From positions 36,175-100,174 of the forward strand of contig JBLDXI010000075.1 of the NCBI GenBank assembly GCA_047495785.1: a stretch of DNA of 64,000 nt, written 5' to 3'. The notes beneath the pieces are model-generated. The model ran no database searches. It was not told the DNA's origin and saw only the letters and a list, made by a program, of their open reading frames with translations. Origin of the DNA: Lepidodermella squamata (taxonomy: Eukaryota; Animalia; Gastrotricha). Both the position numbers and the translations under genes were made by a program. Shown one piece after another: positions 1,283 to 57,100 of this stretch (within the stretch, counting starts at the first letter, position 1; each line of letters starts with the position of its first letter).

Positions 1283-1328
1283 ACATGACTTCAAAAAGCT
1301 TTGATCCTCTTTTAATGGCAACGGAACC

Positions 1329-2954
1329 TTGCCGTGCGACTTAAGAATTCGAGAATTCGACTTACTTGCCGAAACTTTCTCCGAAGTTCTGAAAGGCCCA
1401 CCAGCTACGTCGACCAAGCCAGAAGATGTCAAATTCTGGAATGAAACAGATGCTGCAATGGCCAGTGATGAAACGATGAAACCTTTTCCGACAGTGCCCC
1501 GAAATCAGTCTATAAAAGTTCCAAAATGGGCGGTAAAGCAAATGCTCAGGCAGCTGAAATGGAAGGCCCCTGGTCATGACAATGTCTCAAATATCTTGCT
1601 CAAGAAAGGCGGCTCAGCTCTGGTAGGCCATCTAAGGTATCTCTACAAAGTGAGTTTGAACTCCGGGTATGTACCCCGTGCTTGGAAAATCGCGATTATA
1701 GTGCCCATACTCAAAGAGGGGAAGGATTCACGTTTGCCAGACTCTTACCGACCGGTGTCCCTTCTGCCATCACTCGGCAAAGGGCTCGAAGTAATCGTAG
1801 CGAAATTTCTCTATCGTTTTCTCGAAATAAACAAATTGCTTCCATCCCACCAGTATGGTTTCAGGTCTCTTAGGTCAACCATCGACCCTGTGTTCCGGTT
1901 CATCAGCGACATCGGTCTAGCCATATCAAAACGGCAAAAGCTGGTCGCTATTCTCTTGGATTTCAAGGCTGCATTTGATGTTATATGGCATAACGGCTTG
2001 CGGCTAAAACTAAAACAATCAGGTTTGCCGATTCCATTGGTAAGATGGATTTCGGACTTCTTAAGAGAACGCTCGTTTCAAGTAAGGGTTGGCAGCAGTC
2101 TAAGTGCAAGCAGAGATATTTTTTGCGGCGTACCGCAGGGGTCGCCTTTCGCCTTTATCACCTCTACTTTTTATCTTTTATGCCATGGACATTCAGCCAA
2201 AAGGTTCCTCGCCGCAAGACGCCACCAGATCTGTCGCAAAAGGCACATTTGCTGACGACTCCCTAATCTGTGCCTTCGGCTCCTCGATTGCAGCCAGCGT
2301 CGCGAGGCTAAGAAAGCGCCTACGCTCAATCGAAGTGTGGTGCAACAAATGGCGGCTTCGCTTAAGCCCGGGAAAGTGTGAAGTGATCGTCTTCGGTAGA
2401 TATGGCAACTCGCCTCCTGAAGTACGCTTTGAGCTATATGTCCAGCCCCTGCCTCAGGTCAACCGCGCACGCTACCTCGGGATTTACCTCACACCCCAGC
2501 TAAGTTGGAATTACCATCTTGAAATAATTGCCTCAAAACTGAAGCCTCCCTTGGCGCCCTCTACGCCCTGGCCAAGCGGCATGTTTTGCCTAAAAACCTT
2601 TGTGTGCTCTTTTATAAAACAGTCCTGGAGTCCTTGGTTGCCTATGGAGCCCCTGCCCTTCGTTGCCTTGCGCCCTCCTCGGTTGGAAAACTGTTGGAAA
2701 TCCAAGCCCACTGCCTTCGAGCCTTGTTTGATCTGCCCTTCGAAACGGAAGTAATTGACGTCATCGCTTACGCCGGAGTCGACTCCATTGAGGATGTCTT
2801 CCTTGGTGCCTTCAAACGATATGGCGAACGCTGCTTAGCAGCAGGTCTAGATACGGCGGACTACATCAACTACGTCTGCGGTATCCGCCGAACGTCAGAA
2901 GACGCTCGCAAAGTACTAGCCGATAAGTGCCCAGCTTGGCCGAGAGCGCCGTAA
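1329..2954 (+). mobile_element. 5'-truncated, frameshifted non-LTR retrotransposon reverse transcriptase (Jockey/I-like)
   Basis: Motifs KAPGHD, YRPVSLL, QYGFR, LDFKAAFD, GVPQGS, FADD, RYLG split over three frames (1329, 2104, 2586); no endonuclease domain. Confidence 0.9.
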
Positions 2955-3899: not shown

Positions 3900-5660
3900 A
3901 TGAGCTCCAGGAACGCGTTAGTCATACTCGCTATTACAGGTTTGCTTTCGTTATAAATCTGTTTTGGATATAAAGCTTTTCTGACATTTTTTACAGCTTG
4001 CATGCGCTACATTGCTGGCGACATCGGGGACGACGATGAAATCGCAGATTCATACAAACCACTCACAAACACCACCGTAACTGGGGTCATGGCTAATTAC
4101 ACTCTCGATTTCTATCCATTGGTCGAGACAGAAGAACTTACTAAAGCAAGCCTACTAGCTGTTGGTTGGCCACTAAGCAAATTTTATGGTCCATTCGACT
4201 TCCCGCCGAGGCTAAACCAGCCCAAAACTGACAAAACACCTGTTGCAAAAGTTCGGCTTTCGAGCCAAGCGAAATCCCTGTCACTGTTCTACTTCATTAA
4301 CGCGCCTGAGACAAACTCAAATACTGCTAAAATGCTACTTGACTTCGGCGTGAGCTCAGTACAAGTTAAGAATGGCACGCTGTTCGCGCTGCTTGGTAGA
4401 GGGGTGACGATTTATTTATCGAGGATTGTTTCAAACGGATGGAACTTCGTAGTCTTCAAAATTTACGATGGAATGATGGATAAGCTGGACAGCCGTGTGA
4501 GTATTTACCAAGACACTGCTTGTTTGACGAGTTACAACAGCAAGTTCCTTTACTTGTCAGAAGAAAACGTGGCACTGATTCACTGCAACTGCCGAACATT
4601 GGGGAAGTGCGATTTGAAAAGAGGTTACATAGGTCCAGCACCCGATCAACTGATTGGATTCTGGCCGCTCAACGGAGAAAATCTCGCGAACGAATTTGCT
4701 TACAAAGAGGAGCCTTTTTACATCAACCCCGCTGTTCAAGTGACTTTGGATGAGCCTGGTCCTAATGGGAAAGGTTCTACTTCAATCTCAGTGGAAAGAA
4801 GCATTACGGGCGCCATTTTATCATTCTGTCTTGCTGGACGCGTGGACTTATCCATGGGCTACACTTTGAGCTTCTTCTACCGCATAATGGCTCATCGGGG
4901 GCTTAGTTCGTTGAAGATCTCATTTGTAGCCCCGGTAGCCAACTCGTCGCTAGAGTTTACATACTACAGCGAAATCGGAAAGATGGATTTCGCACTGAGT
5001 TCACCGCAAGGGGTTGAAAATGGGTCTGCAGCCGTTCCAATACCAGGCACTGAATGGATTTTTTTCGCCATCGTTCACGACTCTCAGCGCTTTGGGCTGT
5101 ACAGCCAATTCAGCGTAGGAAAGTTAAAGTACATGGAAGAAGGAAATCCTGTTCATATTGACTTTCCAACAAATTCCGAAATATTAATGACGATTTCAGG
5201 GCAATTTATTCCCGGCGATTTAGTATCATGCGTTCAGTTGCACAACACGGTACTCGTCAAAACAGAAGTTGAATTACTAACATGTGTTTGCCGTGAAAAT
5301 GGGCTATGTAAAGAAGCCGCAGACCTGAATCGCCCGGTTGAGGATAATTATGATATCAAGCAGAGGAAAAGAGAACTTGGTATGAATGTTAAACGGCCAA
5401 ACTCAGCGGCGAGCTGTTCTCACGCCATTGCGCCAATGCCTGGGGGAGAAATCGTGGCTACGACAAGATTCCAGCAAATCACTATCACACCGCTTTCTGA
5501 AGTTAGTAATACCATGGGATTAACCTCAACTGAGTCCAATCCTCTGACGATTCCGCAGGAAACAACCGCGGGAAACTACGCTACGGCTCAGAAGGGTTCC
5601 AAATACGTCACATCTGCTGGTATCTTAACTCTGATTCTTAGAAGATTTGTCTCAGAGTAA
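3900..5660 (+). CDS. Secreted LamG/concanavalin A-like (pentraxin-like) domain protein
   Basis: Predicted exon 3900-3939 and intron 3940-3996 give signal peptide MSSRNALVILAITACMRYIAG; two GxWPL-initiated beta-rich repeats, WxFFAIVHD motif, S/T-rich tail; 3' end uncertain. Confidence 0.55.
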
Positions 5661-6397: not shown

Positions 6398-8273
6398 ATG
6401 AATGTGACCGCCCGTCGCTTACTATCATTCAAACCGTTACCATGGTTTATATGCTTCGTTCTGATTATCTACATCGCCATCCGCGACTGCTCGGTCTCCC
6501 ATCAATCAGCACAGAGAGTTCCCTTGGAAATGTATTCCACCCTAGCGAATATGACGACTTCGGATGTGCCTCGAGGCAATGAGGAAATGGAAACTTTCAA
6601 GAGGCTCATCAAATCGAGTTCTAGCGCAATGGCGAGACTGAGGGAAGTGTGGAAAATATCCTCAGAGGTTATATTCAAAATCGAAAAGCAGTTCAAAATA
6701 TCACATTGTCTATACAAAGAATCCCTACTCGGCTATTTACGTCATAACAAGCGAATTATGCCGTAAGGGAGAATCAATTTGGATAACTTGAATTTCATAG
6801 ATTCCTTTTAGGTGGCACGATACAATCAAAGTTGCTGTGTTCAACCACGATGTGACTACAGTGGCGCAAGTATTGAGAATAGCAGCTCATTTTGAACAAG
6901 CGATCAAGGGTTTGGACGGATATGGCTGCCACTATGACTCTGATACTTACAGGATACGAATCTTTGGCACGTTGCCCGGTAATTCTGAGCCAATCGAGGG
7001 CGAGAAGTGGCGCTGGCCTTATGTGGAAATTCAAGTTTTCAGAGATCATTTCACAGATTCTGGCCGTTTGCGAGAGATTGAGAACCCGTCGACCCCGGAT
7101 TACTGGGTAAGACAATGTTGCCTACTATTGATTAAAACCAGCTGTTTTGTTTTAGTATTCCGCAGATCTGATATATCCTCTCGAAGAGGTCGTTTTCGAA
7201 GGATCACGAGCTAAGGTGCCGAAGCAGATAATGGATGTAGTAGTGCTAGACTTTAATCCTAAATGGTGTGAAACCGCGATTCTCGTGTCAAGAAACAACA
7301 CTCATATCGAAAGATACGATTACGCATTGGTGAAATGCGAAGAGATGGAAAGCTTCGTGGAATTCAGCCTTGATTTCAAAGAAGTGGACAGGTACTACAG
7401 CTCACGAGTTAATCGTTCATGCGATACGCACCCGGACGATCCAGCTCTGTGTTTCTTCGAGCCCCAGGTAACCGAGAGGCAGAAAATCGAAATAGCCAGC
7501 CTTTTTCGAGCTTGCTACGAGGCCGTTAAAAGCATTGAAGAGGACGCAGATCATCTCTTATATTCTGGATCTCTGATCGGCTTCTGGAGACACGGTGGTC
7601 ACATGATTCCGTAAGAATCCTTTCTTAATTCCTGTCAGATGTATCGCTATTTTTCATCATCAGGTGGGACGACGATCACGACATAGCGGTGATCCCGCGA
7701 TCGAACCCAGCAAAATCCGACGACTACTACGCCCAAAAAATGATAGATGCTATGAAAACATATGACGGGAAATACTCCATGTATTTCGATGATTCAAGTT
7801 CGAAGATGAAGTGTTATTTGAATGACGAGAATTCGTTAGCTGTTCCTGCACTTCGTTCCTACCGCGTTCCATGGCGGTGGCCGTTTGTTGATATCAACAT
7901 TATGGAGACGCGTTTCTCGAATAGGACCGGTAAGCTGCTCAAAGTCAGTGAGAAAGGCGGTTTTGATAATTTTAAGGTAAGTTTTTACTCTCTAACTGGC
8001 AATTTAATTGATTTTTCCCGTTTTTTCCGCCAGTATATGGCTAAATGGATTTTCCCAACGGTAAAGGCGATATTCGAAGGCATTGAAGTTAATGTCCCGA
8101 ATGACATGGAGTCATTTTTGGGACAGACTTACACGATCGAAGATTGTGTGGCACCATACTACAGCCATCGTATCGAATATGCGGTCGACCACGGAGACCT
8201 CGATAACAATCATGGATTTCTCAGTAGACCTTGTTCTGACTTGATACATATGTATAACCTTACAAACATATAG
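6398..8273 (+). CDS. LicD/fukutin-family nucleotidyltransferase-fold protein with two tandem LicD domains (type II membrane)
   Basis: N-terminal TM; GSLIGFWRHGGHMIP-WDDDHDI motif; introns 6763-6811, 7107-7155, 7611-7663, 7977-8033 splice in frame. Confidence 0.85.
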
Positions 8274-8412: not shown

Positions 8413-11400
8413 TCACAGATTAGTTTCAATTTCATTTTCGCCAACTCCACCTATTGCATCGCCACTGCTGCTGGCCGGGGAAGTTGCAATGTAAGTCGTG
8501 GTCGTTGCGAAAGAAACGCTTCTCGTCATTAAAGCCTGGTGACTGCCAGCTCCAGAACTGCCGTGACCTTCACGCTTGACTAAACACCCGCTACTACTGG
8601 TGGCTGTGCTGTTCGCGGATCCGTTGCCTGCCTTCGTCCTGTAACCGCCATTGCCATTCAACTGCCCGCTACCGTATGTCGCCTCTCCGTTTTCACCTCC
8701 AGATTTCGAAACCACAGATAGGGATTGAGGCTTGCGGGAAACATTATGGTGATGGCTTTGAGAAGCTCGATGGTGCACGCCGTTGCTATTGTGAGACGGG
8801 CTTATTTCTTGCGGATAATTGTGCGGTGAATGTGCGTGACAGTGACTATTTTTCAAGCTCGGACGACTCTTCAACAAAGGTTCGGAATCTTCTTCATCAT
8901 CGTGTTTTTGGGCTCCGTTCGGGACATAGCCTGTTGTGCTGATTGAGTGCAAAATTGAAGGAGGTGATGGCAAGGCTCTGTGATAAAAAATGAAAGGTGT
9001 CAAAAATAAACAGATTGGATTTCAAGGGGTAAATCTTCCATCTCGATGTCGAAAGACTCAGATTCTTTCAGTTGACAGTAAGAATCTCGTTGTCTTAGAT
9101 TCAAAACAAATATTCGAAACCAAGCAACATTTTAGGAAAAGTCTGACTTACGGTTTGCTAGGAGTCATAATTTGCTTTGTCGGAGTAGATTTCACAGATT
9201 TCAAAGGGATATTAGGATTGCCAACTATGGGTGACTTGAAATTGACAACTGGCGAGTCAGCTGGATTATCGGGGCCAAAAGTCGTCTCTCGCTTTAGAGG
9301 TGTCCCAGTGAATAAATGGGCCCTAAAACCAAACGCTTTTAAATGCAGACATTGACTCGAAGAAAATCTTACTCGAAAACCCGAAGTTGATTTCTAGCCC
9401 GTCGCAATTGCGCCTTCAAAAATTCGTGCTGAAACTGGCAGGCATGGCTGGTACACGGCTTTTCCGACTGAAGCTTCCAAATCGCACCCGCAACGGTGTC
9501 TTTGAAGCTCAGAGATGCTCCCATGCTCTGGAAAAGAAAGTTAATTATTAATTGGCTAGAGATTGCAAAGCGATGATATATTAAGTGCAAAAACCAAAAT
9601 CTTGTGAGTTCTGAAAAGTGAGGTTCTGGGTGTTTGCTGAACTAGAATCGTGAGTAACACAAATTATATTTAGGTTACGCCTTACCCGTTGTCTCATTTT
9701 GAGACGGTGAGATAAATCCTAAATTCGATCATGGGAGGGTTTATTTCCGACAAAATTCGGACCTCAGAAAAATGACTTACAAGTGAAATTAATCCGCATA
9801 GACCGCATTTGTCTACTTTGCGAAGTTGCCGCCTTCCATATCTCACGTAAAGGTGTTCGAATAGCAGGAAGAATGAGCAAGCTACCAGGCCAACGACCAA
9901 CATGATGAAAGCTGAGGTGAAATTGAGAATCCCCAGCTCTTGGCTTTGGGTCGACTCCTGTTTTTGCCTTTCTTTGCAAGCTCCGGTTAACCAAAATTCT
10001 TGCAGTTGCTGTAGATACCCAGTATGTTGGTAGTCTATTATGAATTTGTTGATGACTGGTAGCCATTTCGAGCCTTTGGGGAAGGCGATTCCGTAACCAG
10101 TCATCGCATACCATTTACCAACAGTCCTTAACCGGCATTCCTTATCTCGTCCGGCTTTATATTCAAGGACGGTGGCGTCGTAGATGAAAGCATCAAGATC
10201 TCTGGATGTGTAGAGCATAGATTCAAGAACTTTCATCCTAAAAGGCATACCCTTTCTTAACAGCCCACATCCCATCATCGGCTGTGCTTCTGTTGTAAAT
10301 CCGCATGTATTCATACATATCAGGAAAATTGTGCTTGATAATAGCTTCTGTTGCCCCAGAAGGAATTGTTGCAAATTTCCAGGGAGGGTTTTTCGAAAAA
10401 GGATTCTTCAAGCGGAGATCATCGATTCCAGTAAAGTCGTAGAAGTCTTCTTTGGTAATCATGAAAGCAGCGAGCTGAAATGGACCAAGTCTCAAACTGG
10501 CATTTTCCGAATGGGTAAACTTACATTGGCCATGTAGCTACTCATAAAAATGACGCAGAATACACCCCAGAAGCTAGCCATTAGCCGAGCGCCGATACCA
10601 CGTGGAATATCGACCTTGACAGCGGCTTTGAACAACATGGCCCATACCAGCCAAAGTGATCGAAAAAGCGAGAACTTGTGAGCTGTATAAGCAGATAAGT
10701 AACAAAGGAGTGACAACTGTTTGACCCAGATTAGAACTCAAAGCTAGAAGCTAAAATGAAAGAAATTTGTCTCACTACCAGACCAGACATGGGGGATGAG
10801 TTGAGGAAAATAAAACCGAGAATTTGGATTTATCGAGTTGAACCAAACAAACCTCTCATCACTATCATTCCGTTGCGAAGCATCAACATTTTAGTAATTT
10901 TTCATCAAGTGAAAAAACTTCACATTAAAGCTGATGATGAGTGTTAACATACTGATCGCTGAAGCTTGACCACGATCTAGTCCACGGGGGCTGAAATACT
11001 CGAACAAAAAGCATGATATGGCGCTGGCGTTGACGCATCCTATCAGTACAACCACCCAGGCACCAATTGAGAATGGCTCCAAGAATGCAACTGGAGAGAT
11101 TACTCCTTCCCTGACTCGAACAAGAATCGTAATTCCTACAATAAAGAAGTAGTTTTGAAATCACACATAAGTCATGAAGAGTTTACCAGTCTCAAGGAAG
11201 GGAATCGAGAAGTCAATAGCAGTACTTCGCTCCTTTGAAATTTTCAGAGATGTAACAACCATATCGGCATGGCCTTCCAGCAAAGCTTCGACTAATCCGT
11301 TCCACTTGCCAGTGTTTCGATCGATCGCTCCCCATTTACGATCATGGACTTCGTAGAGCTCGAAACGAAACCCAATATCGGTCGAAAGACGGCGTAGTAG

Positions 11401-14064
11401 ATCCATGCAAAAGCCAACGCAGCACACCCAAGATCCATTGTTATGAATTTGTTGTTGTAGGGTTGATGACGAAGTTGGGCTTACGAAAGTGTAGGACGTA
11501 ACAGCTCGGGGTTTTCCTGTCTCATTACTGTAACAAGGTCATTGGGGGTCATTTTCCTAGGTAACTCGGTATACTGACCTGTAAGTTCCAACCTCGCCTT
11601 GAAGAACCAGTGTCATAGTGGCGTTTAATTCGGTTTTGCTAACAATAACTGGGGACAATCGGCAAGGAACAGCCGTCCGAGGGCAAACCCCACTGATGGG
11701 GTCCGGAGGCTCATACACCACATACTGAAGAGATTAGCAAAATGATTGAAGAAAGAATAAGAAAAGGTGACAATTACCGGAGGCTCTTCTAGAGTGGCGA
11801 TTTTCAAGATTGTAGCATCAGGCCTGCCAGAAGGTGGTTTACCCGGGCCAGCTGGCCAAGTGATATCGTCCATTAGAAGCCCTAATTCTCGCGTCCACTC
11901 GCCAATCTTCTTCCACTGCCGATTTGGATCGAGATTGAGCACAGTAACTGCTCCCAGATCGGTCAATCCACTGTCGTCGAACTTCGAACTCACTTGGTCA
12001 AACATTTTCACTGGAGTCCTTTTGATCAGTCTGTACACAAGTTGGAAAACTGTTAGCATAAGTCTTGAACAGTGGATGAAGTAGGATCCTCGAGGTGGGG
12101 GAACGTGTGGGTATTTTCAGCCCAGAATTTATCTAACCAAAAGGTCTCCCTGTGGTTTTTTGGGTTTTTTTTAGCAGGAACTCTCGAGGAGTACGGTACC
12201 CCTAAAGTCCGGTACTTCGCACACTGGTCTTGAAAAAGAAGGTTGGAGTGAATAAGTGTGAACTGTTTGCAAAATATGGCATTTTCTGTTAAGATTAGAG
12301 GGAAATACCGTTAGACAACCTCAATAGGTAGCGTGGCCGAGTGGTCTAAGGCGCTAGATTTAGGCTCTAGTCTCTTCGGAGGCGTGGGTTCGAACCCCAC
12401 CGATGCCATCATTTTTGCTGGGAATGTCCTTATTGCTGTTGCGCTTTTAATGGACCTAATTATGAAATAGCCAAAACTAATGGCAGCGGTGGGGTTCGAA
12501 CCCACGCCTCCGAAGAGACTAGAGCCTAAATCTAGCGCCTTAGACCACTCGGCCACGCTACCTATTGAGGTTGTCTAACGGTATTTCCCTCTAATCTTCA
12601 AAGTGCCCCATGTTCCACATCTAACCGTTAGAACACACGGGTTCGTACATCAAGCGCACTGTTCGAAGTTCGATCCTTTCCATAATTGAGAATTCCATGT
12701 AGGTAAACTCTAAAACCCTATTTCAATTCACTTTTGACCTAAAATCTCCTCTACATCCCGAGAAAGGGCTATCCTAAAAATCGCAACTTCTCTCTCCGTG
12801 AACGACCCCACTTAGAAAGGACTTACTTATGAAATGTTTCGCCCCATCTCCATTTCTTTAGCGCCGAGCCATCGCACGGTATGCGCGGCGCAACTCGATC
12901 GATCGTAATATTCGGCATCTGTACAAACTTCTCCATCGCATCCGACCACAACTTGGTCGCCGCTTTCAAAGCTTCATGCTGAACAGCCAGCGTTGTATTG
13001 TACGTAATCGCTATCGTACCAGGTATAAAATTCATCGATGGCGTCGACCGTTCGCCAGAATCGCCGAGAACTGGCTTGGCACATATCCATAAATACTCGC
13101 CGCTTGTCATTCCCAACATTCGAGCCTCCTCGAAAATATCGTTCGAAGCGCCATGGTCTGCGAATAGCACGACAATACGGGTGTCAGTGCTGTCGCGAAG
13201 GTCCATCAACTCGCCCCGTATGACGTCACGTGACGAATTGGCTAATTTTACCACGCGAATGATACGCGATGACATATGCGATTGGTGCGAATCGAACGAA
13301 AATCGAGTGTACCGATTATCCTCAGAATTGACAAGGTCGCGCAGTTCATTGATAAAGTACTCATTCCCGGCAGTTTGGCTCGAAACCAGGATTGAAAACC
13401 GCCGCCATTGATATGTTGATAGAAACGCGAAAATTGCATTGGCTTGCGCTCGAGTGGGCGGAGCGATCAAAAATCGGTAATTCGTCGCGCTATTCGTTGA
13501 GGAGTCTTCAATTTCGTTCGACAAGCTCGACCAGGCAATTGTCGGTATCCCAGCTGTATCGGCTAGGGTTGTTATGAAATTAGCGATTCGAGTCCCGTCA
13601 TCGCTTTGAATTGACTTATCGACCAGAATGAACATTGCATTGATACCCTCGGCGGCTCTTGAGCAGAATAAGTTTTGAGTCAGCTCGCCTAGGGACACTC
13701 CATTTGCGTAGACCGGGTTAACCCGAAGCCGGTAAGGTACCGATGGGTAATTGGTTTGCTTCCGAGTGGTTGATGTTGATGAGGTGAAATTTGCAGTTGA
13801 TGACGTTGGGGATACTTTGTTCATGGTGGAAGATGTTGAACCTTTGCCAGCTGTAGTTCGTCTCGCTTGGTTGACTGCGAGAAATTGGCGCAGTTGTTCA
13901 CGCGTTTTTGAGTCCGTCAACGATTGGCTGGGCAAGACGAAGCCTATTGTCACGGTGACAGGCTGGCCTTGAGTCTGGGCTATAGCTGCTTGTTGATGGA
14001 GCGGCATTTGAGCAGTGGTGGCAGTGATGAGCGTCGAAATTGTCAAAACCGTTGATAGCTTCAT
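8413..14064 (-). CDS. NMDA-type ionotropic glutamate receptor subunit, GluN2/Nmdar2-like (multi-exon)
   Basis: Signal peptide, ATD, S1 ([21 protein letters not shown]), M1-M4, S2 ([23 protein letters not shown]), C-terminal PDZ ligand ETNL; intron 1 is 12031-12826. Confidence 0.92.
12327..12408 (+). tRNA. tRNA-Leu(TAG) with one acceptor-stem mismatch
   Basis: GGTAGCGTGGCCGAGTGG...TTTAGGC...long variable arm...GGTTCGAACCCCACCGATGCCA. Confidence 0.85.
12481..12562 (-). tRNA. tRNA-Leu(TAG)
   Basis: Inverted copy of the gene at 12327 with an intact acceptor stem. Confidence 0.93.
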
Positions 14065-51745: not shown

Positions 51746-54130
51746 TCAAATCGGTGACAATTTTTTAGATAATTCCTTTGGACGCATCGGCGACGTAATT
51801 CGAGATAATCGAACAGCTGCCGCTTGTCGGCGGGTCGCATTGCCTGGAGTTGTGCTGCGTATTCCCGTGGTCCCCATCTCAACCTTCGCATTTTTAAGAA
51901 TTTTCAGCAGCAGTGTCGAAACAATCAAAGACACCATTAGATCGATTATAGCTACGCCCAGTTGCTGATCCAAAGGATTCCTCAGCATTAGCATAATCAA
52001 GCTGGAGCAAGGTATGACAGTCGAAAAAATGAGTACAATGACCGACATTTCCTTGAACCCAGGCATCAAATCATCTCGCTTGGATTGTTTCAAGTTGAAC
52101 AAAGCAAAAGCGGCCGGGATTAAAATAGCGAAATTGGCCGACAAGAGGCTTGCGAGCCAAGAAATCTGATCTGTTGAGGTGCAAACGATGGCGTAGCTTT
52201 CAACAAACGCATCGGCCCCTTCATCGCGGTAACCTAATCCGATATTAGCCTCAGCGCACTGCAATGGTTCGATCGCAAACAGCCATAGGCTCAAAATGAG
52301 AATATTAAGTAAAAGAAATGCAAAAGATGCCTTCAACGCCCCGAAAGTTTCGAAAATCATTGCTTTAGGAGGCTCGATAACGACTCTCTGAAAAATGGAT
52401 TTCCGACTAGACAACCTTGGGCCAGCACTTTGATGTTGAATAGTTCGATTCATTATAAAAATCTGAAACGATACTGCCGACGTTATGATTGACAGCGAAG
52501 TGAATTGAAGGAACAATCGAGCAATCCAAACTTTAAGCGGTGAAATCGAAGTTTCGAGAACAAAAAGTATGGAAGACAAAGACAATAGAAGGCTTCCTGA
52601 TAGACAGCAAATTATTAAAAGCGGACAGTTCCGTTTCTCCCTGTTCCTAAACACGAGGATACTGATGTAAAGTTGGAAAATTAGCAGAAAGCCAGAAGTA
52701 GTCGATACTATTATCAAAGAAATCCAGCTATTATCCACCAGACGTTTGACCACAGATTCCAGATCTTTCGGGCTTCTGCCGTCCAGGGTTGGCCAAGGGA
52801 ATTTGTCCACTATCAGCGTTACTTCAGTGTTCTCATATTCATCGCTCGAATTTGAAGCTATACTCACAGCTTGCACTAATTTAGACCCATTTAGCAGAGT
52901 AACATAGTAAGGCGTATTTTGTAGATTTCCCTTGCTATCATAAGTTACAACTGAGGTTCTCAGCGGATTGTATTTGATAGCGACGAAGTTTTCCTTGGCT
53001 GCTTCTATAACTAAACTAGGTTTAGTTACAAAATCTCTCAGAGAAAGATTTCTAGAGCTCAAATGTTTCTCGGTCCTATCCAGGGCGACAATCGTTTGCA
53101 TCACAGTATCATGGCAAACCCAATTGTAACCGTAGTCGGAGGTTTTCACTCCTCGACTTCTCTCATTGAACAAAACATCGAATTCCCTCTTACTGTAACC
53201 AAAATCACTGTTATGCGTTTCCTCCCCATCTCCATCGATTGAGGCAAGGACCAGCGTTTGCTTGAACTGCTCCATATAGATTTCTTTGCTGCAATTAAGA
53301 CTTGCAGTTGATAGATCTGTCACCCAAGTCCAAAGAGCTTGAATTCCTGTGTCAATTCCCAAATAGAGATACTTCGGCCCCTTCAAATCGGCTTCGTAAG
53401 CCAGGCAGAAGAGGTTAGGGTGCCAGGAAGTGCTGTAAATCAGGATTATCCTCAGATCTTTCTCCTTCAGATTTCGAGCAGCTTGCAAGTCGAAACTAGC
53501 CACTGTTTCGAATACAGGAACTGCTACGCCTTGCGACTGAGCTGCGTTCAAAAAATGAAGACCACCTGTGAAATCGTTAGAATTTTCCTGATTGATGATT
53601 ACTGCTATATTGCGCCACTTTCCGATTGTCTTCATAAATTTGATGTAACCGAAATTTTTGTTAATCATAGTAGTGAGGGATAGATACATATTAGGGTACC
53701 TTTTACGGTCTGATAGAACGGGGTGAGTACAAATTGATGAGACGCTCATGAAATGGATGTGATGTAGAAAATTGCCAATCCCGCGGCATCCATTCGAATT
53801 CCAAGGTCCTGCAGCTATCGGGGATGGGTATTCTACCGAATCTCCCCGGTTTTCGAAATAATTGCGGTAGTAGTCAATGAAAGCTGTAGGGGCGTTATTC
53901 CCTCCCAATTTTTCATCGCCGAATATGAGTTCAACATTGTACGAAGGTAGATACTTTGTGTTGTTGTTAGCCCATTCAGCTGCTAGCGATGCAGCCAGTC
54001 GACACATGATTGGGACGTAGTCTGTTCCTGTGATTCGACTCTGGACATGCAGAGCCAACGTATATGGCTTCGGCTGGCTAAGTTGTGTTTGGATACTTGG
54101 AATAGATAGCAGTATTATGACGGAAATCAT
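51746..54130 (-). CDS. Class C GPCR, GABA-B-receptor-like (intronless, divergent)
   Basis: Signal peptide; Venus flytrap domain (GP..S..C, LSDRKRYP, W..IAVI); 7TM without a Cys-rich domain. Confidence 0.85.
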   Translation of the reverse strand: MISVIILLSIPSIQTQLSQPKPYTLALHVQSRITGTDYVPIMCRLAASLAAEWANNNTKYLPSYNVELIFGDEKLGGNNAPTAFIDYYRNYFENRGDSVEYPSPIAAGPWNSNGCRGIGNFLHHIHFMSVSSICTHPVLSDRKRYPNMYLSLTTMINKNFGYIKFMKTIGKWRNIAVIINQENSNDFTGGLHFLNAAQSQGVAVPVFETVASFDLQAARNLKEKDLRIILIYSTSWHPNLFCLAYEADLKGPKYLYLGIDTGIQALWTWVTDLSTASLNCSKEIYMEQFKQTLVLASIDGDGEETHNSDFGYSKREFDVLFNERSRGVKTSDYGYNWVCHDTVMQTIVALDRTEKHLSSRNLSLRDFVTKPSLVIEAAKENFVAIKYNPLRTSVVTYDSKGNLQNTPYYVTLLNGSKLVQAVSIASNSSDEYENTEVTLIVDKFPWPTLDGRSPKDLESVVKRLVDNSWISLIIVSTTSGFLLIFQLYISILVFRNREKRNCPLLIICCLSGSLLLSLSSILFVLETSISPLKVWIARLFLQFTSLSIITSAVSFQIFIMNRTIQHQSAGPRLSSRKSIFQRVVIEPPKAMIFETFGALKASFAFLLLNILILSLWLFAIEPLQCAEANIGLGYRDEGADAFVESYAIVCTSTDQISWLASLLSANFAILIPAAFALFNLKQSKRDDLMPGFKEMSVIVLIFSTVIPCSSLIMLMLRNPLDQQLGVAIIDLMVSLIVSTLLLKILKNAKVEMGTTGIRSTTPGNATRRQAAAVRLSRITSPMRPKELSKKLSPI

Positions 54131-57100
54131 CTTCGCGTCAAATTGAAGTTAATGCTTCAATCTGCTCCCGTTTAGGGTTTTTAACTCAAACCTCGACGAT
54201 CCTGTCATGCCAGCGGAATTTATTAGCTGGATCATCGAATGGGTCTCGAATTAGAATTGTTGAACGTGATTCAAATGCTTGAATTAGCGACGATGCTAAA
54301 CGCCTAAATGACTATATCATATCACTCTGTTAAGACAGATGCTTGACGCCTGGTGACGATTGTGACTCACCAACGGACTACGGACTGTACCGACTGTACC
54401 GATTTCATAGCCAAAGTAGAGCTCTTTTCAAGCCAGACGACTCGATAATAGACAACTTGTTCCGGCGAGATCTCACTGAAATGCTTTCAACTCAAGCTCA
54501 GCCCCTCCAGAGAATAAATCCCAAAATAGGAAATTCGGTAAAAAACATCACAAGGGCGCCGCCATTCACAGAGTCGAAGGAAAAAAGATTCCATGAATCG
54601 CGTACAATGTTCTACATCGCGTATTAGTGGGCGTACATGCCTGAAATTGTATTTACTCGTGGAGGCGATGAACAATTTTAAATTTTCAAAATTGTCGAGG
54701 CTGTGGGGAAGAAGCAATATGTGATCTTGCTGATTTTCGTAATTAGGTAATTGAATAATTAAAAAACCCAAATTGATTAATTGTTAATTAGGTTGCAGGT
54801 TTAATTTCCGTCTATTTCTTCAGTATACCTTCACCTTTTTTCATTGGAATTTTCATATTGCGCAAAACTTTCACAACCAGTTTTTTTCTTCTCCTCTGCG
54901 TCTTTATTTGTTCATTTTCTCACTCATTCGAATGAAACTGACCCACCATCCAGCCGACGTAGAATCCGAGCTCAGTTGGGTTGATTAGGATATCAAATTG
55001 AAGCTCTAAATAAGTTGGCAGCGTCAAAAAAAGTATTATGAAGCATTATCTGAAAATTTAGCCACAAAAACAATTTACCTCCAGGATGAAACTACTCAGA
55101 CCATGAGACGTAGCTAGGACGTCGCAGCTGGGATTTTTACGAGAAAAAAATGAAATGAGAGATAATGAGGTCGAAGGTCGCGTTTTGAAAATAATGAGAT
55201 GAATCATCTCATTATCTTTTGGCGCCAGATGTTGTGATGAAGCTGCTGATTTCGAGAAAAAAGAGAGTGTTTCATACGCCGTAAGTGCTACTTAGCAAGT
55301 GAAAAGATGAAAAAAATGTCACGATTGAAAAGATGAAACCATAGAAGAATTTTAGAAAATCATGATTTTTATTGCTTCGGTAAATATCACAATCACAAGG
55401 GTATCACAAGGGTATCACATACAAGGGTAAAGCTGAGCAAATCGGATGAAAATTCGTCAAAAATAAAACGGAAAATAATTAGTCTTTTTTGAATTGCTTT
55501 CTCTCAATTGAGACTTGAACGCAGTGATAGGGAGGATGCTCCAAATTTTTCGCGATAAAATCTCACGGTTCTTCGTGCCAAGATGTATTTGAGGCGGCAC
55601 AAAGACGGGAGAATGATCGATTTTTCTTTGATTTTGTTCAACTCGCCGCCCATACGATTTGCCACATCATCCAGCTTTTTGAAAGTAGTCATATCTTCAC
55701 GGTACTTCGCTGAAAGAGCCACCTTAATGATGGCCATAACGTCGCCGTTCGGCTAGTTGGCACCACTGCGCGAGCGCAACTCGACGTAGTCACTGTGGTA
55801 CGCCTCGGTCGGTTTGAGGCCCAGTTTTTTCGTGATAAATCTGCCTACCCATGCGATGGTGTTGTGGTCGAATTAGTGATGCTCAACGATTATTTTTTTT
55901 CAAATGGTTCAATGAATCGTAATCGAATCGAATTAATCGCGATTTCTTGTCCGCAGAATCGACCCGATCAATCGAATCGATTAATCGGATGTGAAGCTAT
56001 TTCCAAAAAGGCGGAAAAATCGAATTTTTGAAATTTTGATATCTTTGCAACTAAGTTTTTTCATTTCCCTTGACTTGAATCTACGCAAAAACTGCATAAT
56101 TTGATATGTGACTCGACCTAGGAAGTTCGGCGATTTTAAAAAATGATTATGTGCAATAAATCAATAAATTTTTTAATTAGCACTAATTATCTCCGGAAGT
56201 GTGATAAATATCAAAATTCTGCAAAAAGGATCGGATTCCTCGTGAAAAACTGACTTTCTACGGGGGATTTGAAGGCAAAAGGAAGCGTTTTTCCGGTTTC
56301 ATTTTAATTGATTGAAATTAATTTGATTAAAACAAATTCCGGAAGTTATTTTTGATTTTTCGATCTTCGCCTGAATAAAGATCCTGTCGCTGTCAAACTC
56401 ACTAGGTCGAATGGCTGGGCAAATGAACACGATGCATGCTGGACTGCCGAGACTTCTCGAAGGCACTTTTCTTCAACTGCCGCGCGACTTTGATACTCAG
56501 TGAGGCAACCGCCCCTCGAGCTTTCACATTTCCCCCGTGAGATACGCCCCAGTAACCGCCGGCAACTCGCAATATCCCAGAACGGCGCTGAATAGCTCTG
56601 AAGGCGGGGTTGGATTTCGAGGAATTTCCGTCTCTACGGAATTGATTGAAAAGCATCTCATTTGCGTCTTGATTCGCTCTTGCTGGGTAAAACTGGGTAA
56701 ATCGAAGGTTGACGATAGTAAATTCAATAGCAGGCTGTCATCCAATAACTCGTCTGGAGAGTTTGCAAGGACAATTGCCAGGACAATAACTGAGAGGAAC
56801 CCTCTCATTCTTGAATCTTCTTCAGTTCTAACTTCAATAAATTCCCTCTAAATTGAAAATAGGACCAGGTAAAATTGAAAAATCCGGCAGAAGCTCCCGC
56901 CTACAGAACATTTTCCATCAACAAATTTCAAGTAAATAAATTGATAAAAAATCTAAATAAATCGAACTTTAACGTGACCAACGTGACAAGTTCCATGAGA
57001 CGTAGTTACATGCCAAGTTCAGGTCCATTCCAGCTCGCTCTATCAATTTAGACGGTGAAAAATGAAGCCCAGCAGAGGAACAAAGTGAACTCGAACTTGT

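Follow-up and report, generated by a model that had tools for sequence, protein, structure and literature searches.

NMDA receptors are seen as coincidence detectors because the asparagines at the tip of the pore loop give them Mg2+ block and high Ca2+ permeability. GluN3 subunits have low Ca2+ permeability and are insensitive to Mg2+, and they also carry a genomically fixed positive residue at the tip of this loop: the GluN3A pore reads LLFGRTV, with Gly at the Q/R/N site (site 0, or the N site) and Arg at +1. The N site forms the tip of M2, and substitutions there in GluN2 greatly lower Mg2+ block (PMC6080888). With N615I in GluN2B, Mg2+ block is abolished and the Ca2+ current is 11% (PMC5840332), and with N615K in GluN2A, at the neighbouring site, Mg2+ block is strongly reduced and conductance is four-fold lower (PMC6418762).

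Edited GluA2(R) and GluK2(R), and a Hofstenia AMPA receptor subunit with a genomic Arg, also have a positive charge at the homologous position of the pore or beside it. When present in two of the four subunits, such a charge abolishes both Ca2+ permeation and polyamine block (PMC13520880, PMC12226733), and an AMPA receptor subunit with a genomic pore Arg presents a linear current-voltage relation (PMC13520880). For NMDA2A, the site was called 'otherwise invariable' in a recent paper (PMC12226733). In the literature covered, which did not extend to the 2013 study of the NMDA receptor of Brachionus by Kenny and Dearden, no paper reports an invertebrate GluN2 with Lys or Arg at its Q/R/N site.

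The window, i.e., the whole 64-kb stretch of DNA that was analysed, contains a GluN2-class gene on its minus strand (8413..14064), with 10 exons, 3,684 nt of coding sequence and 1,227 residues. The gene is intact, with GT-AG borders at all nine introns, an unbroken frame and a single terminal stop. Exons were searched singly, and were joined solely for the local count of frame and stop codons. In tblastn searches, the gene is collinear with the GluN2 of molluscs. Pfam detects ANF_receptor, then Lig_chan-Glu_bd, then Lig_chan on successive exons, and the domain order comprises an amino-terminal domain, a bipartite S1/S2 region, M1, the M2 loop, M3 and M4.

All exons lie on the minus strand. Exon 1 (12827..14064; ANF_receptor, E = 5e-20) holds the start codon, a signal peptide beginning with MKLSTVL, and the amino-terminal domain; it is 54% identical to exon ORF P0001 and 42% identical to P0002, and its ESM Atlas matches are generic ANF_receptor clusters. 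The end of this domain and a linker are in exon 2 (11778..12030), placed by tblastn with mollusc GluN2 and by splice sites, and S1 starts in exon 3 (11579..11724), placed by splice sites and frame. Exon 4 (11187..11527; Lig_chan-Glu_bd, E = 1e-26, and alignments) encodes the S1 half of the ligand-binding domain, including the SLKISKER motif, while exon 5 (10953..11135), which was identified by tblastn to relatives and splice sites, encodes the pre-M1 segment and M1. The M2 pore loop and M3 are encoded by exon 6 (10525..10682), supported by an ungapped alignment with GluN2A-D and by Pfam Lig_chan. Exon 7 (10251..10474) provides the M3-S2 linker and the first part of S2, with SGATE, according to the gene model and tblastn with mollusc GluN2 and relatives. 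The remaining S2, M4 and a post-M4 Cys cluster are in exon 8 (9781..10201), which matches GluN2A-D in the PDB. Exon 9 (9373..9527) encodes a juxtamembrane C-terminal segment, located by splice sites and by 68% identity to positions 13464-13622 of a related metagenome gene, L001. In the gene model, exon 10 (8413..8977) encodes a low-complexity tail followed by the stop codon. The tail ends in ETNL (8416-8427), which we take to fit a class I PDZ ligand (S/T-x-hydrophobic). An end of this type is conserved, as the tail of L001 has a matching one, and this conservation argues for a subunit that would be synaptic and scaffolded. Local tblastn within the 64-kb window detected no GluN1 gene, the sole match being the GluN2-class gene itself.

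The initial annotation had proposed a genomically encoded lysine at the Q/R/N site of an NMDA subunit. Lys739, in exon 6, is encoded by AAA on the minus strand (10627..10629; ttt on the plus strand). In phmmer searches against PDB chains, it aligns with N614 of GluN2A and N615 of GluN2B, i.e., with the first N of FNNSV. The alignment of exon 6 with GluN2A-D (E from about 1e-9 to 3e-10) is gapless from the two Trp of M2 to the SYxANLAAF motif; residues 3-53 of the query correspond to 598-648 of GluN2A and 599-649 of GluN2B, and the Lys is query residue 19. The lysine is thus exactly on the Q/R/N site rather than beside it. A genomic Lys at this site of a GluN2-class subunit is confirmed as encoded.

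The pore loop of the window gene reads FKAAV, with Lys at site 0, Ala at +1 and a second Lys at +4 (codon AAG, 10615..10617, minus strand), so that the vertebrate-type Asn pair at the Q/R/N and N+1 sites is replaced by Lys and Ala. Additionally, a Met (ATG, 10531..10533, minus strand) replaces the Thr of the SYTANLAAF gating motif, which after splicing reads SYMANLAAF and keeps eight of the nine residues. Neither a second copy of the M2 exon nor an alternative M2 exon was found by local tblastn in the 64-kb window. RNA editing was considered as a source or modifier of the charge and rejected: the Lys is genomic, and the pre-mRNA fold at exon 6 (z = +0.82) is no better than that of shuffled sequences and gives no duplex of the editing type.

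The assignment of the gene to the NMDA GluN2 class was upheld by similarity and phylogeny. For each of exons 6 and 8, the 60 top-ranking PDB sequences are GluN2A-D throughout (E down to 8e-25 for exon 8), and no GluN3 chain is among them. In the trees, the window gene falls inside the protostome GluN2 group, apart from the GluN3-like rows. The gene is not of the GluN3 class, given its FKAAV, compared with FGRTV in GluN3A, and its best PDB matches, which are GluN2. The S1 Arg (in SLKISKER) is aligned with R518 of GluN2A, and the Tyr-Asp of S2 (in FIYDAT, 10177-10182) with Y730/D731. The residues of a glutamate-type binding site are kept, and glutamate binding is predicted. The changes of Thr513 to Lys and Ser689 to Ala were also considered as marks of an unusual binding site, an idea that was discarded since these residues recur in the GluN2 of arthropods and other protostomes; the Ser/Thr binding-site positions differ in the same way in other protostome GluN2.

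The near relatives of the window gene are found only on metagenome contigs, and, among named proteins, the GluN2 of molluscs, annelids and flatworms come closest. Five further genes of its clade (L001-3, L004, L005-8 and both L014 genes), which sit on independent metagenome contigs, have Lys at the Q/R/N column, coded by AAA or AAG, so a base error is highly unlikely. Another paralog in the clade, L012, has Asn there. The +4 Lys is conserved in L001, L004, L005, L014a and L012, and also in the rotifer Didymodactylos carnosus; the same five clade genes share the Met of SYMANLAAF. Comparisons among clade genes yielded a pS of 0.83-0.89, i.e., saturated synonymous sites, against a pN of 0.10-0.27. 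The lysine is, on sequence grounds, under long-term purifying selection.

Among 52 readable GluN2 cluster representatives, site 0 is Gly in 24, Asn in 14, Ser in seven, Gln in five and Lys in two. Protostome GluN2 have Gly, Ser or Gln at this site and Ala at N+1. Gln is found in pancrustaceans, Gly in molluscs, flatworms, annelids, chelicerates, myriapods, a tardigrade and a nematomorph, and Ser in nematodes and some gastropods. Outside the rotifers, the metagenome gene L016 and the clade of the window gene, the sole charged case among the protostome GluN2 read is L017, an arthropod-like metagenome gene with Lys at site 0. Hence, the initial annotation's contrast between N in vertebrates and Q in insects describes states that both occur, yet it is too narrow, given the G, S or Q of protostomes and the Arg of rotifers. 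This survey shows that protostomes differ in the residue encoded at the N site of GluN2 (G, S, Q, K or R). Moreover, the Asn pair is missing in all protostome GluN2 read, and it therefore defines the deuterostome form rather than the GluN2 class.

The rotifer set included Rotaria sordida, R. socialis, R. sp. Silwood1/2, Adineta steineri and A. ricciae (all unnamed products), 'NMDA 2B' of Brachionus plicatilis and a Didymodactylos carnosus gene. All ten readable proteins from Rotaria, Adineta and Brachionus combine Arg at site 0 with Lys or Arg at +4, as does the metagenome gene L016 (Arg codons CGT and CGA). The D. carnosus gene, on CAJNOQ010002783, has Lys at both positions. Rotifer GluN2 thus resemble the window gene in that the Q/R/N site and the +4 site are both occupied by fixed positive residues, within the same protostome GluN2 family, and the window gene falls within a proposed grouping of positive-pore GluN2 (rotifer type, Lys or Arg at sites 0 and +4). 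The rotifer proteins differ in their Arg at site 0, with Didymodactylos as the sole Lys case, and in keeping the normal SYTANLAAF, whereas the clade of the window gene has Lys and SYMANLAAF. A quick tree placed this clade and the rotifers as sister groups (support of 91). In more careful trees, the two are not joined in the best tree, yet a joint clade costs only 0.07 log-likelihood units and is not rejected (AU p = 0.505), so that shared and convergent origins of the charged pore are both compatible with the data. Given that it is common to the close relatives and to all rotifers sampled, the charged pore is an old feature. The +4 lysine, the spread of the charge across the clade and the rotifer Arg are observations that go beyond the initial annotation.

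Like vertebrate GluN2A-D, the window gene has the two Trp of M2, the glutamate-site residues Tyr-Asp and Arg, a Cys cluster after M4 and a PDZ-type C-terminus, and its domains come in the same order. The vertebrate subunits, however, present Asn-Asn at 0/+1, Pro at +4 and the Thr of SYTANLAAF, where the window gene has Lys-Ala, Lys and Met. The other protostome GluN2 (insect Nmdar2, nematode NMR-2 type, mollusc, flatworm and annelid), which belong to the same clade as the window gene, also have Ala-Ala-Val after site 0, SLK in S1 and GAT in S2, but their site 0 is uncharged (Gln, Gly or Ser), except in L017. GluN3A/B share the fixed positive charge, although theirs is at +1 instead of site 0, they bind glycine, and the exons of the window match GluN2 far better. 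Edited GluA2(R) and GluK2(R), like the Hofstenia subunit, belong to another iGluR class, and in mammals the charge that is encoded in the genome here is acquired by editing. Finally, the GRIN2A N615K and GRIN2B N615I variants substitute a residue at or next to the site of the Lys, but they are pathogenic, de novo and on an Asn-Asn background, while the Lys is a conserved wild type on a Lys-Ala background.

We consider it probable that the window contains a functional gene for a glutamate-binding NMDA subunit of the GluN2 class, belonging to a lineage-specific clade in which a positive pore charge is genomically fixed. Such a subunit would assemble with a GluN1 partner, two GluN1 with two GluN2. 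Two diagonally opposite subunits would then contribute two (or four) ammonium groups, located at the selectivity filter or immediately beneath it, an arrangement comparable to that of edited GluA2(R) in AMPA receptors. Divalent cations would be repelled by these charges, so that voltage-dependent Mg2+ block would be slight or absent, Ca2+ permeability and unitary conductance would be lowered, and the current-voltage relation would be close to linear. The analogy with edited GluA2, GluN3 and GRIN2A N615K predicts a channel of low conductance that is poorly permeable to Ca2+ and weakly blocked by Mg2+. Instead of acting as a Ca2+-passing coincidence detector, the receptor would then be a slow channel for monovalent cations that is gated by glutamate, and the Asn-bearing L012 suggests that permeation may be tuned through the choice of subunit gene.

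The initial annotation had anticipated a Ca2+-impermeable, Mg2+-insensitive or modulatory subunit. The direction of the predicted effect agrees with published mutants (PMC5840332, PMC6418762). Given the Asn pair was already gone in protostomes before the Lys appeared, however, a loss of Mg2+ block is not to be credited to the Lys alone: with Gly, Ser or Gln at site 0 and Ala at +1, the ancestral protostome state lacked both Asn, and the phenotype may be partly older than the Lys. Ca2+ impermeability is the weaker half of the claim since, according to reviews, it is mainly Mg2+ block that responds to substitutions at the Q/R/N site of GluN2, whereas Ca2+ permeability is only weakly affected (PMC6080888). 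It also counts against a strong effect that, on the GluN2 side, the narrow constriction of vertebrate receptors is formed by the N+1 site and not by the N site (PMC6080888). The Lys side chain is flexible and could point away from the pore axis, and the Met of SYMANLAAF could either compensate for the effect of the Lys or add to it.

That the Lys is a tolerated variant at an unconstrained protostome site, with permeation and block set mainly by the GluN1 Asn and other residues in an ordinary protostome-like receptor, is unlikely, although it is the best placed of the alternatives. The variation among protostomes (G, S and Q), the Asn of L012 within the clade and the weak influence of the vertebrate GluN2 N site on Ca2+ permeability (PMC6080888) are all in its favor. 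Variation elsewhere, however, is limited to small or polar neutral residues, while the clade of the window gene and the rotifers keep a charge at two positions despite Lys/Arg exchange, the use of both Lys codons and saturated synonymous divergence. Besides, even a neutral substitution at this site abolishes Mg2+ block in GluN2B (PMC5840332).

A non-conducting or dominant-negative modulatory partner, which would lower or silence the currents of other NMDA subunits or signal without ion flux, is improbable. GluN3, with its Arg at +1, damps conventional NMDA currents. A pore charge in all subunits often leads to poor expression or tiny currents, as in the placozoan S642R receptor (PMC12226733), and the current of GluA2 Q1R alone is undetectable (PMC13520880). 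Against this, the charge occurs in most members of the clade and in every rotifer GluN2 read, which makes it the main GluN2 type there and not an accessory one. The residues of the glutamate site, the gate region, the Cys cluster and the PDZ-type end are all kept; with its full GluN2 build and conserved C-terminus, the gene lends no specific support to the modulatory role suggested in the initial annotation.

It is very improbable that the double positive ring at sites 0 and +4 makes the channel partially permeable to anions, which would turn the glutamate conductance mixed or inhibitory. Each subunit does have two Lys in the filter region, and Burnashev et al. are said to have found in 1996 that homomeric Arg-form AMPA and kainate channels are measurably permeable to Cl-, but the charges would be on only two of four subunits if GluN1 is conventional. 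An artefact (a base error, a pseudogene or a misplaced alignment) has practically no likelihood, given the same residue in related genes of independent assemblies, the intact gene with canonical splice sites, the strong purifying selection and the ungapped alignment.

If the favored reading of a charged-pore, glutamate-binding GluN2 is extended, the NMDA hallmark of Ca2+ entry gated by Mg2+ block may have been lost or moved in this lineage, and perhaps in all rotifers: most GluN2 genes would have a charged pore, a minority paralog would carry Asn, Ca2+ permeability would be set by the paralog expressed, and doubly charged forms might pass anions. We see little chance that this wider proposal is correct, but, if true, the choice of paralog would be a genome-encoded counterpart of the Q/R editing of AMPA receptors.

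In humans, a Lys next to the Q/R/N site leads to severe epilepsy (PMC6418762). In an entire clade of GluN2 genes, a positive charge at the site is the conserved wild type, and the same holds, with Arg, for every readable rotifer GluN2. These genes constitute a natural experiment on the evolution of Mg2+ block and Ca2+ permeation, and they provide ready sequences in which the effects of Lys and Arg at the N site of GluN2 can be studied against a native background. Should the charge have the effect expected from mutagenesis, glutamatergic signalling in these animals would operate without the classical NMDA mechanism, or would obtain that mechanism from another subunit.

The lysine at the Q/R/N site of the pore loop (site 0; +1 and +4 denote residues after it) is residue 739 of a GluN2-class gene at 14064-8413 on the minus strand, which comprises 10 exons, 3,684 coding bases and 1,227 residues. 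Pfam matches are ANF_receptor for exon 1 (14064-12827), Lig_chan-Glu_bd for exon 4 (11527-11187) and Lig_chan for exon 6 (10682-10525), and exon 8 (10201-9781) encodes S2 and M4. The other exons, likewise on the minus strand, lie at 12030-11778 (exon 2), 11724-11579 (exon 3), 11135-10953 (exon 5), 10474-10251 (exon 7), 9527-9373 (exon 9) and 8977-8413 (exon 10). All nine introns are GT..AG and six measure 49-53 bases; the longest, intron 1 (12031-12826, 796 bases), contains an inserted repeat-like stretch. The reading frame is unbroken over all junctions and the sole stop is the final codon (counted locally on the joined exons; homology searches were run exon by exon). Within the 64-kb window, the gene and its M2 exon each occur once.

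Mollusc GluN2 proteins are collinear with the gene along its full length, and the best 60 PDB matches of exon 8 are all GluN2A-D, with E-values down to 8e-25. Exon 8 also retains Tyr-Asp where GluN2A has Y730/D731, the residues that distinguish glutamate-binding from glycine-binding subunits; the S1 Arg is retained as well. In the spliced gate motif, SYMANLAAF, Met replaces the Thr of SYTANLAAF. The C-terminus, ..ETNL, is a putative class I PDZ ligand, and the nearest relative ends in ..SETNL, preceded by the same ..RSVSFATT.. stretch. By its domain order, closest matches and glutamate-site residues, the gene is a GluN2-class member; its gate motif agrees in eight of nine positions, and the vertebrate Asn pair has no counterpart here or in any protostome GluN2 that was read. 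A GluN3 identity was rejected, given that the exons match GluN2, the glutamate-type Tyr-Asp is kept and the positive residue occupies site 0, not +1 as in GluN3 (GluN3A has Gly-Arg at sites 0/+1).

Elsewhere in the window, two adjoining ORFs at 7156-8270 (+) converge on the 3' end of the NMDA gene, and the second of them weakly matches LicD; the related gene on metagenome contig L004 likewise has a LicD gene nearby. A single ORF of 800 residues at 51749-54148 (-) has an ANF_receptor match at E 6e-17 and a 7tm_3 match that, at 31.8 bits (E 1.5e-7), is slightly below the Pfam gathering score of 33.5 bits; it is probably an intronless class C receptor gene of the metabotropic glutamate / GABA-B type. 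A 567-residue open reading frame at 3957-5657 (+) is without a Pfam match. Retroelement reverse-transcriptase ORFs (RVT_1) are found at 1305-2751 (+), and ORFs near 62-63 kb resemble them by look.

The codon at 10627-10629 is ttt on the plus strand and thus AAA, Lys, on the minus strand. It lies in exon 6, whose 158 bases encode the M2 pore loop and M3, and whose translation ends ..SSYMAN and contains the M2 stretch as quoted in the initial annotation. When compared by phmmer with all PDB chains, exon 6 aligns ungapped with GluN2A, 2B, 2C and 2D (E 3e-10 to 6e-9), its residues 3-53 corresponding to GluN2A 598-648 and GluN2B 599-649 in chains with native numbering. Hence the Lys, residue 19 of the query, falls on GluN2A N614 / GluN2B N615, the first Asn of FNNSV, and the placement at the Q/R/N site proposed in the initial annotation is confirmed. 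This Asn is homologous to the AMPA-receptor Q/R site and to GluN1 N616. The human GluN2A variant N615K differs in being at +1, one residue beyond the Lys site.

In a word search with exon 1, two metagenome contigs proved to carry ORFs of exon size with 54% and 42% identity, and related genes were read from these contigs and from those of further matches (L-numbers denote contigs). One gene seen in three samples (L001-3) and another seen in four (L005-8) have AAG (Lys) at site 0 and a SYMAN gate, while the L004 gene, from one sample, reads ..LLFKGGMKVD.. with SYMAN and uses AAA (Lys). Two tandem genes on L014, also from one sample, both have AAA, reading ..MLFKASVKVH.. with SYMAN and ..MLTKSILPVE.. 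with FYTAN. The one member of the window's clade with Asn at the pore site (L012, 3630-7063, one sample) reads ..MLFNAAMKTD.. with SFMAN; its codon is AAC, and +4 is still Lys. Between the window gene and those of L001, L004 and L005, the share of differing synonymous sites is 0.83-0.89, i.e., saturated, versus 0.10, 0.11 and 0.27 for non-synonymous sites. This disparity indicates that the Lys has been kept under purifying selection over very long divergence, with both Lys codons in use.

In the metagenome organisms carrying these relatives, the GluN2-like family has evidently expanded. Of the two tandem genes, which span 825-6739 on L014, one is a single 912-residue ORF. The L005 gene is nearly intronless, and a Gag-type CCHC zinc knuckle, CKNCGGRGHISTVC, is at its end (8502-8795). 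Adjoining the Asn-type gene of L012, on the opposite strand, a 716-residue ORF (287-2437) with an ANF_receptor match is possibly a class C receptor.

In trees built on the exon 8 alignment (141 columns), a clade unites the window gene with L001, L004, L005 and L012 (support 92/99), and the rotifers form a separate clade (support 96/86), with L016 beside Brachionus. The two clades are not joined in the best careful tree, yet forcing them together costs only 0.07 log-likelihood units (AU p 0.505), so that a joint clade is not rejected. The closest named GluN2 relatives of the window gene are annelid, mollusc and flatworm, its near relatives coming from metagenomes only.

The first tree placed the clade of the window gene next to a group containing a protein from contigs of GCA_905250885.1 and GCA_905249995.1, assemblies of the bdelloid Didymodactylos carnosus (PMC7943196). 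This annotated protein (P0054) is without a pore loop because the prediction skipped three small exons encoding the M2 loop and M3, and the absence is thus a prediction error. In the DNA (L010, CAJNOQ010002783.1, 2160-2530), three exons with good splice sites read ..WLSWVILFK GPGKVVYPKCFASKFI GNIW..TASYTANL (also rendered as ..VILFK, GPGKVVYPK.. and ..TASYTANL), with Lys at site 0 and at +4. A word search with the D. carnosus protein gave named rotifer proteins, 10 of them with a readable site: Rotaria sordida (two), R. socialis, R. sp. Silwood1, R. sp. Silwood2 (two), Adineta steineri, A. ricciae (two) and Brachionus plicatilis. All 10 present Arg at site 0, Lys or Arg at +4 and a normal SYTANLAAF, so a positively charged residue at this GluN2 site is general in rotifers. 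The L016 gene (Logan SRR33465427) reads ..LLFRAATRVQ.., with Arg at site 0 (CGT) and at +4 (CGA). In the same match list, site 0 is Gln in 79 insect proteins, Gly in 17 proteins and Ser in 6.

An exon 8 HMMER search covered 1.84 billion cluster representatives, and among the best 150 matches the pore loop was readable in 52, with Gly (24), Asn (14), Ser (7), Gln (5) or Lys (2) at site 0. Deuterostomes (vertebrates, Branchiostoma, Saccoglossus) carry Asn-Asn. Site 0 is Gly in molluscs, flatworms, Gordionus, Hypsibius, one millipede and one sea spider, Ser in nematodes and some gastropods, and Gln in pancrustaceans; almost every protostome has Ala at +1. The contrast drawn in the initial annotation, N in vertebrates and Q in insects, is true yet incomplete, since protostomes also have Gly or Ser. 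The two Lys representatives are the second L014 gene (b) and P0090, the protein of L017 (ENA ERZ27291483), an arthropod-like gene that groups with an arthropod Gln-type gene. This grouping indicates that Lys at site 0 arose at least twice, the L017 charge being of independent origin. Our literature search found no report of Lys or Arg at site 0 in an invertebrate GluN2, Kenny and Dearden 2013 (Brachionus receptor) being outside its coverage; a recent paper terms the NMDA2A site 'otherwise invariable' (PMC12226733).

Q/R/N substitutions in GluN2 strongly reduce Mg2+ block and affect Ca2+ permeability less (PMC6080888). GluN2B N615I, which affects exactly the residue aligned with the window's Lys, eliminates Mg2+ block and leaves 11% of the Ca2+ current (PMC5840332). 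At +1, GluN2A N615K markedly reduces Mg2+ block, with a four-fold lower conductance (PMC6418762). AMPA receptors in which two of the four subunits have a pore Arg lose both Ca2+ permeation and polyamine block; in a Hofstenia AMPA subunit such an Arg is encoded in the genome (PMC13520880). Given these mutant and AMPA data, together with GluN3A, we consider it fairly probable that, when two window-type subunits combine with two GluN1, the filter would have two to four fixed positive charges. Such a receptor would be only slightly blocked by Mg2+, less permeable to Ca2+ and low in unitary conductance, and its I-V relation would be near-linear.

The Lys side chain may be turned off the pore axis. 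A tolerated variant of little effect is a reading to which we give a minor chance. That the subunit is silent or damping seems unlikely, and a partly anion-permeable channel more improbable still. An artefact is scarcely credible: the base error named in the initial annotation as a possible refutation was not borne out, the Lys recurring in related genes as AAA and AAG, so that it is taken as genuine.

Neither Asn was present in the protostome ancestor, so some of the predicted behaviour may be older than the Lys. The subunit is predicted to work like GluN3 or edited GluA2.
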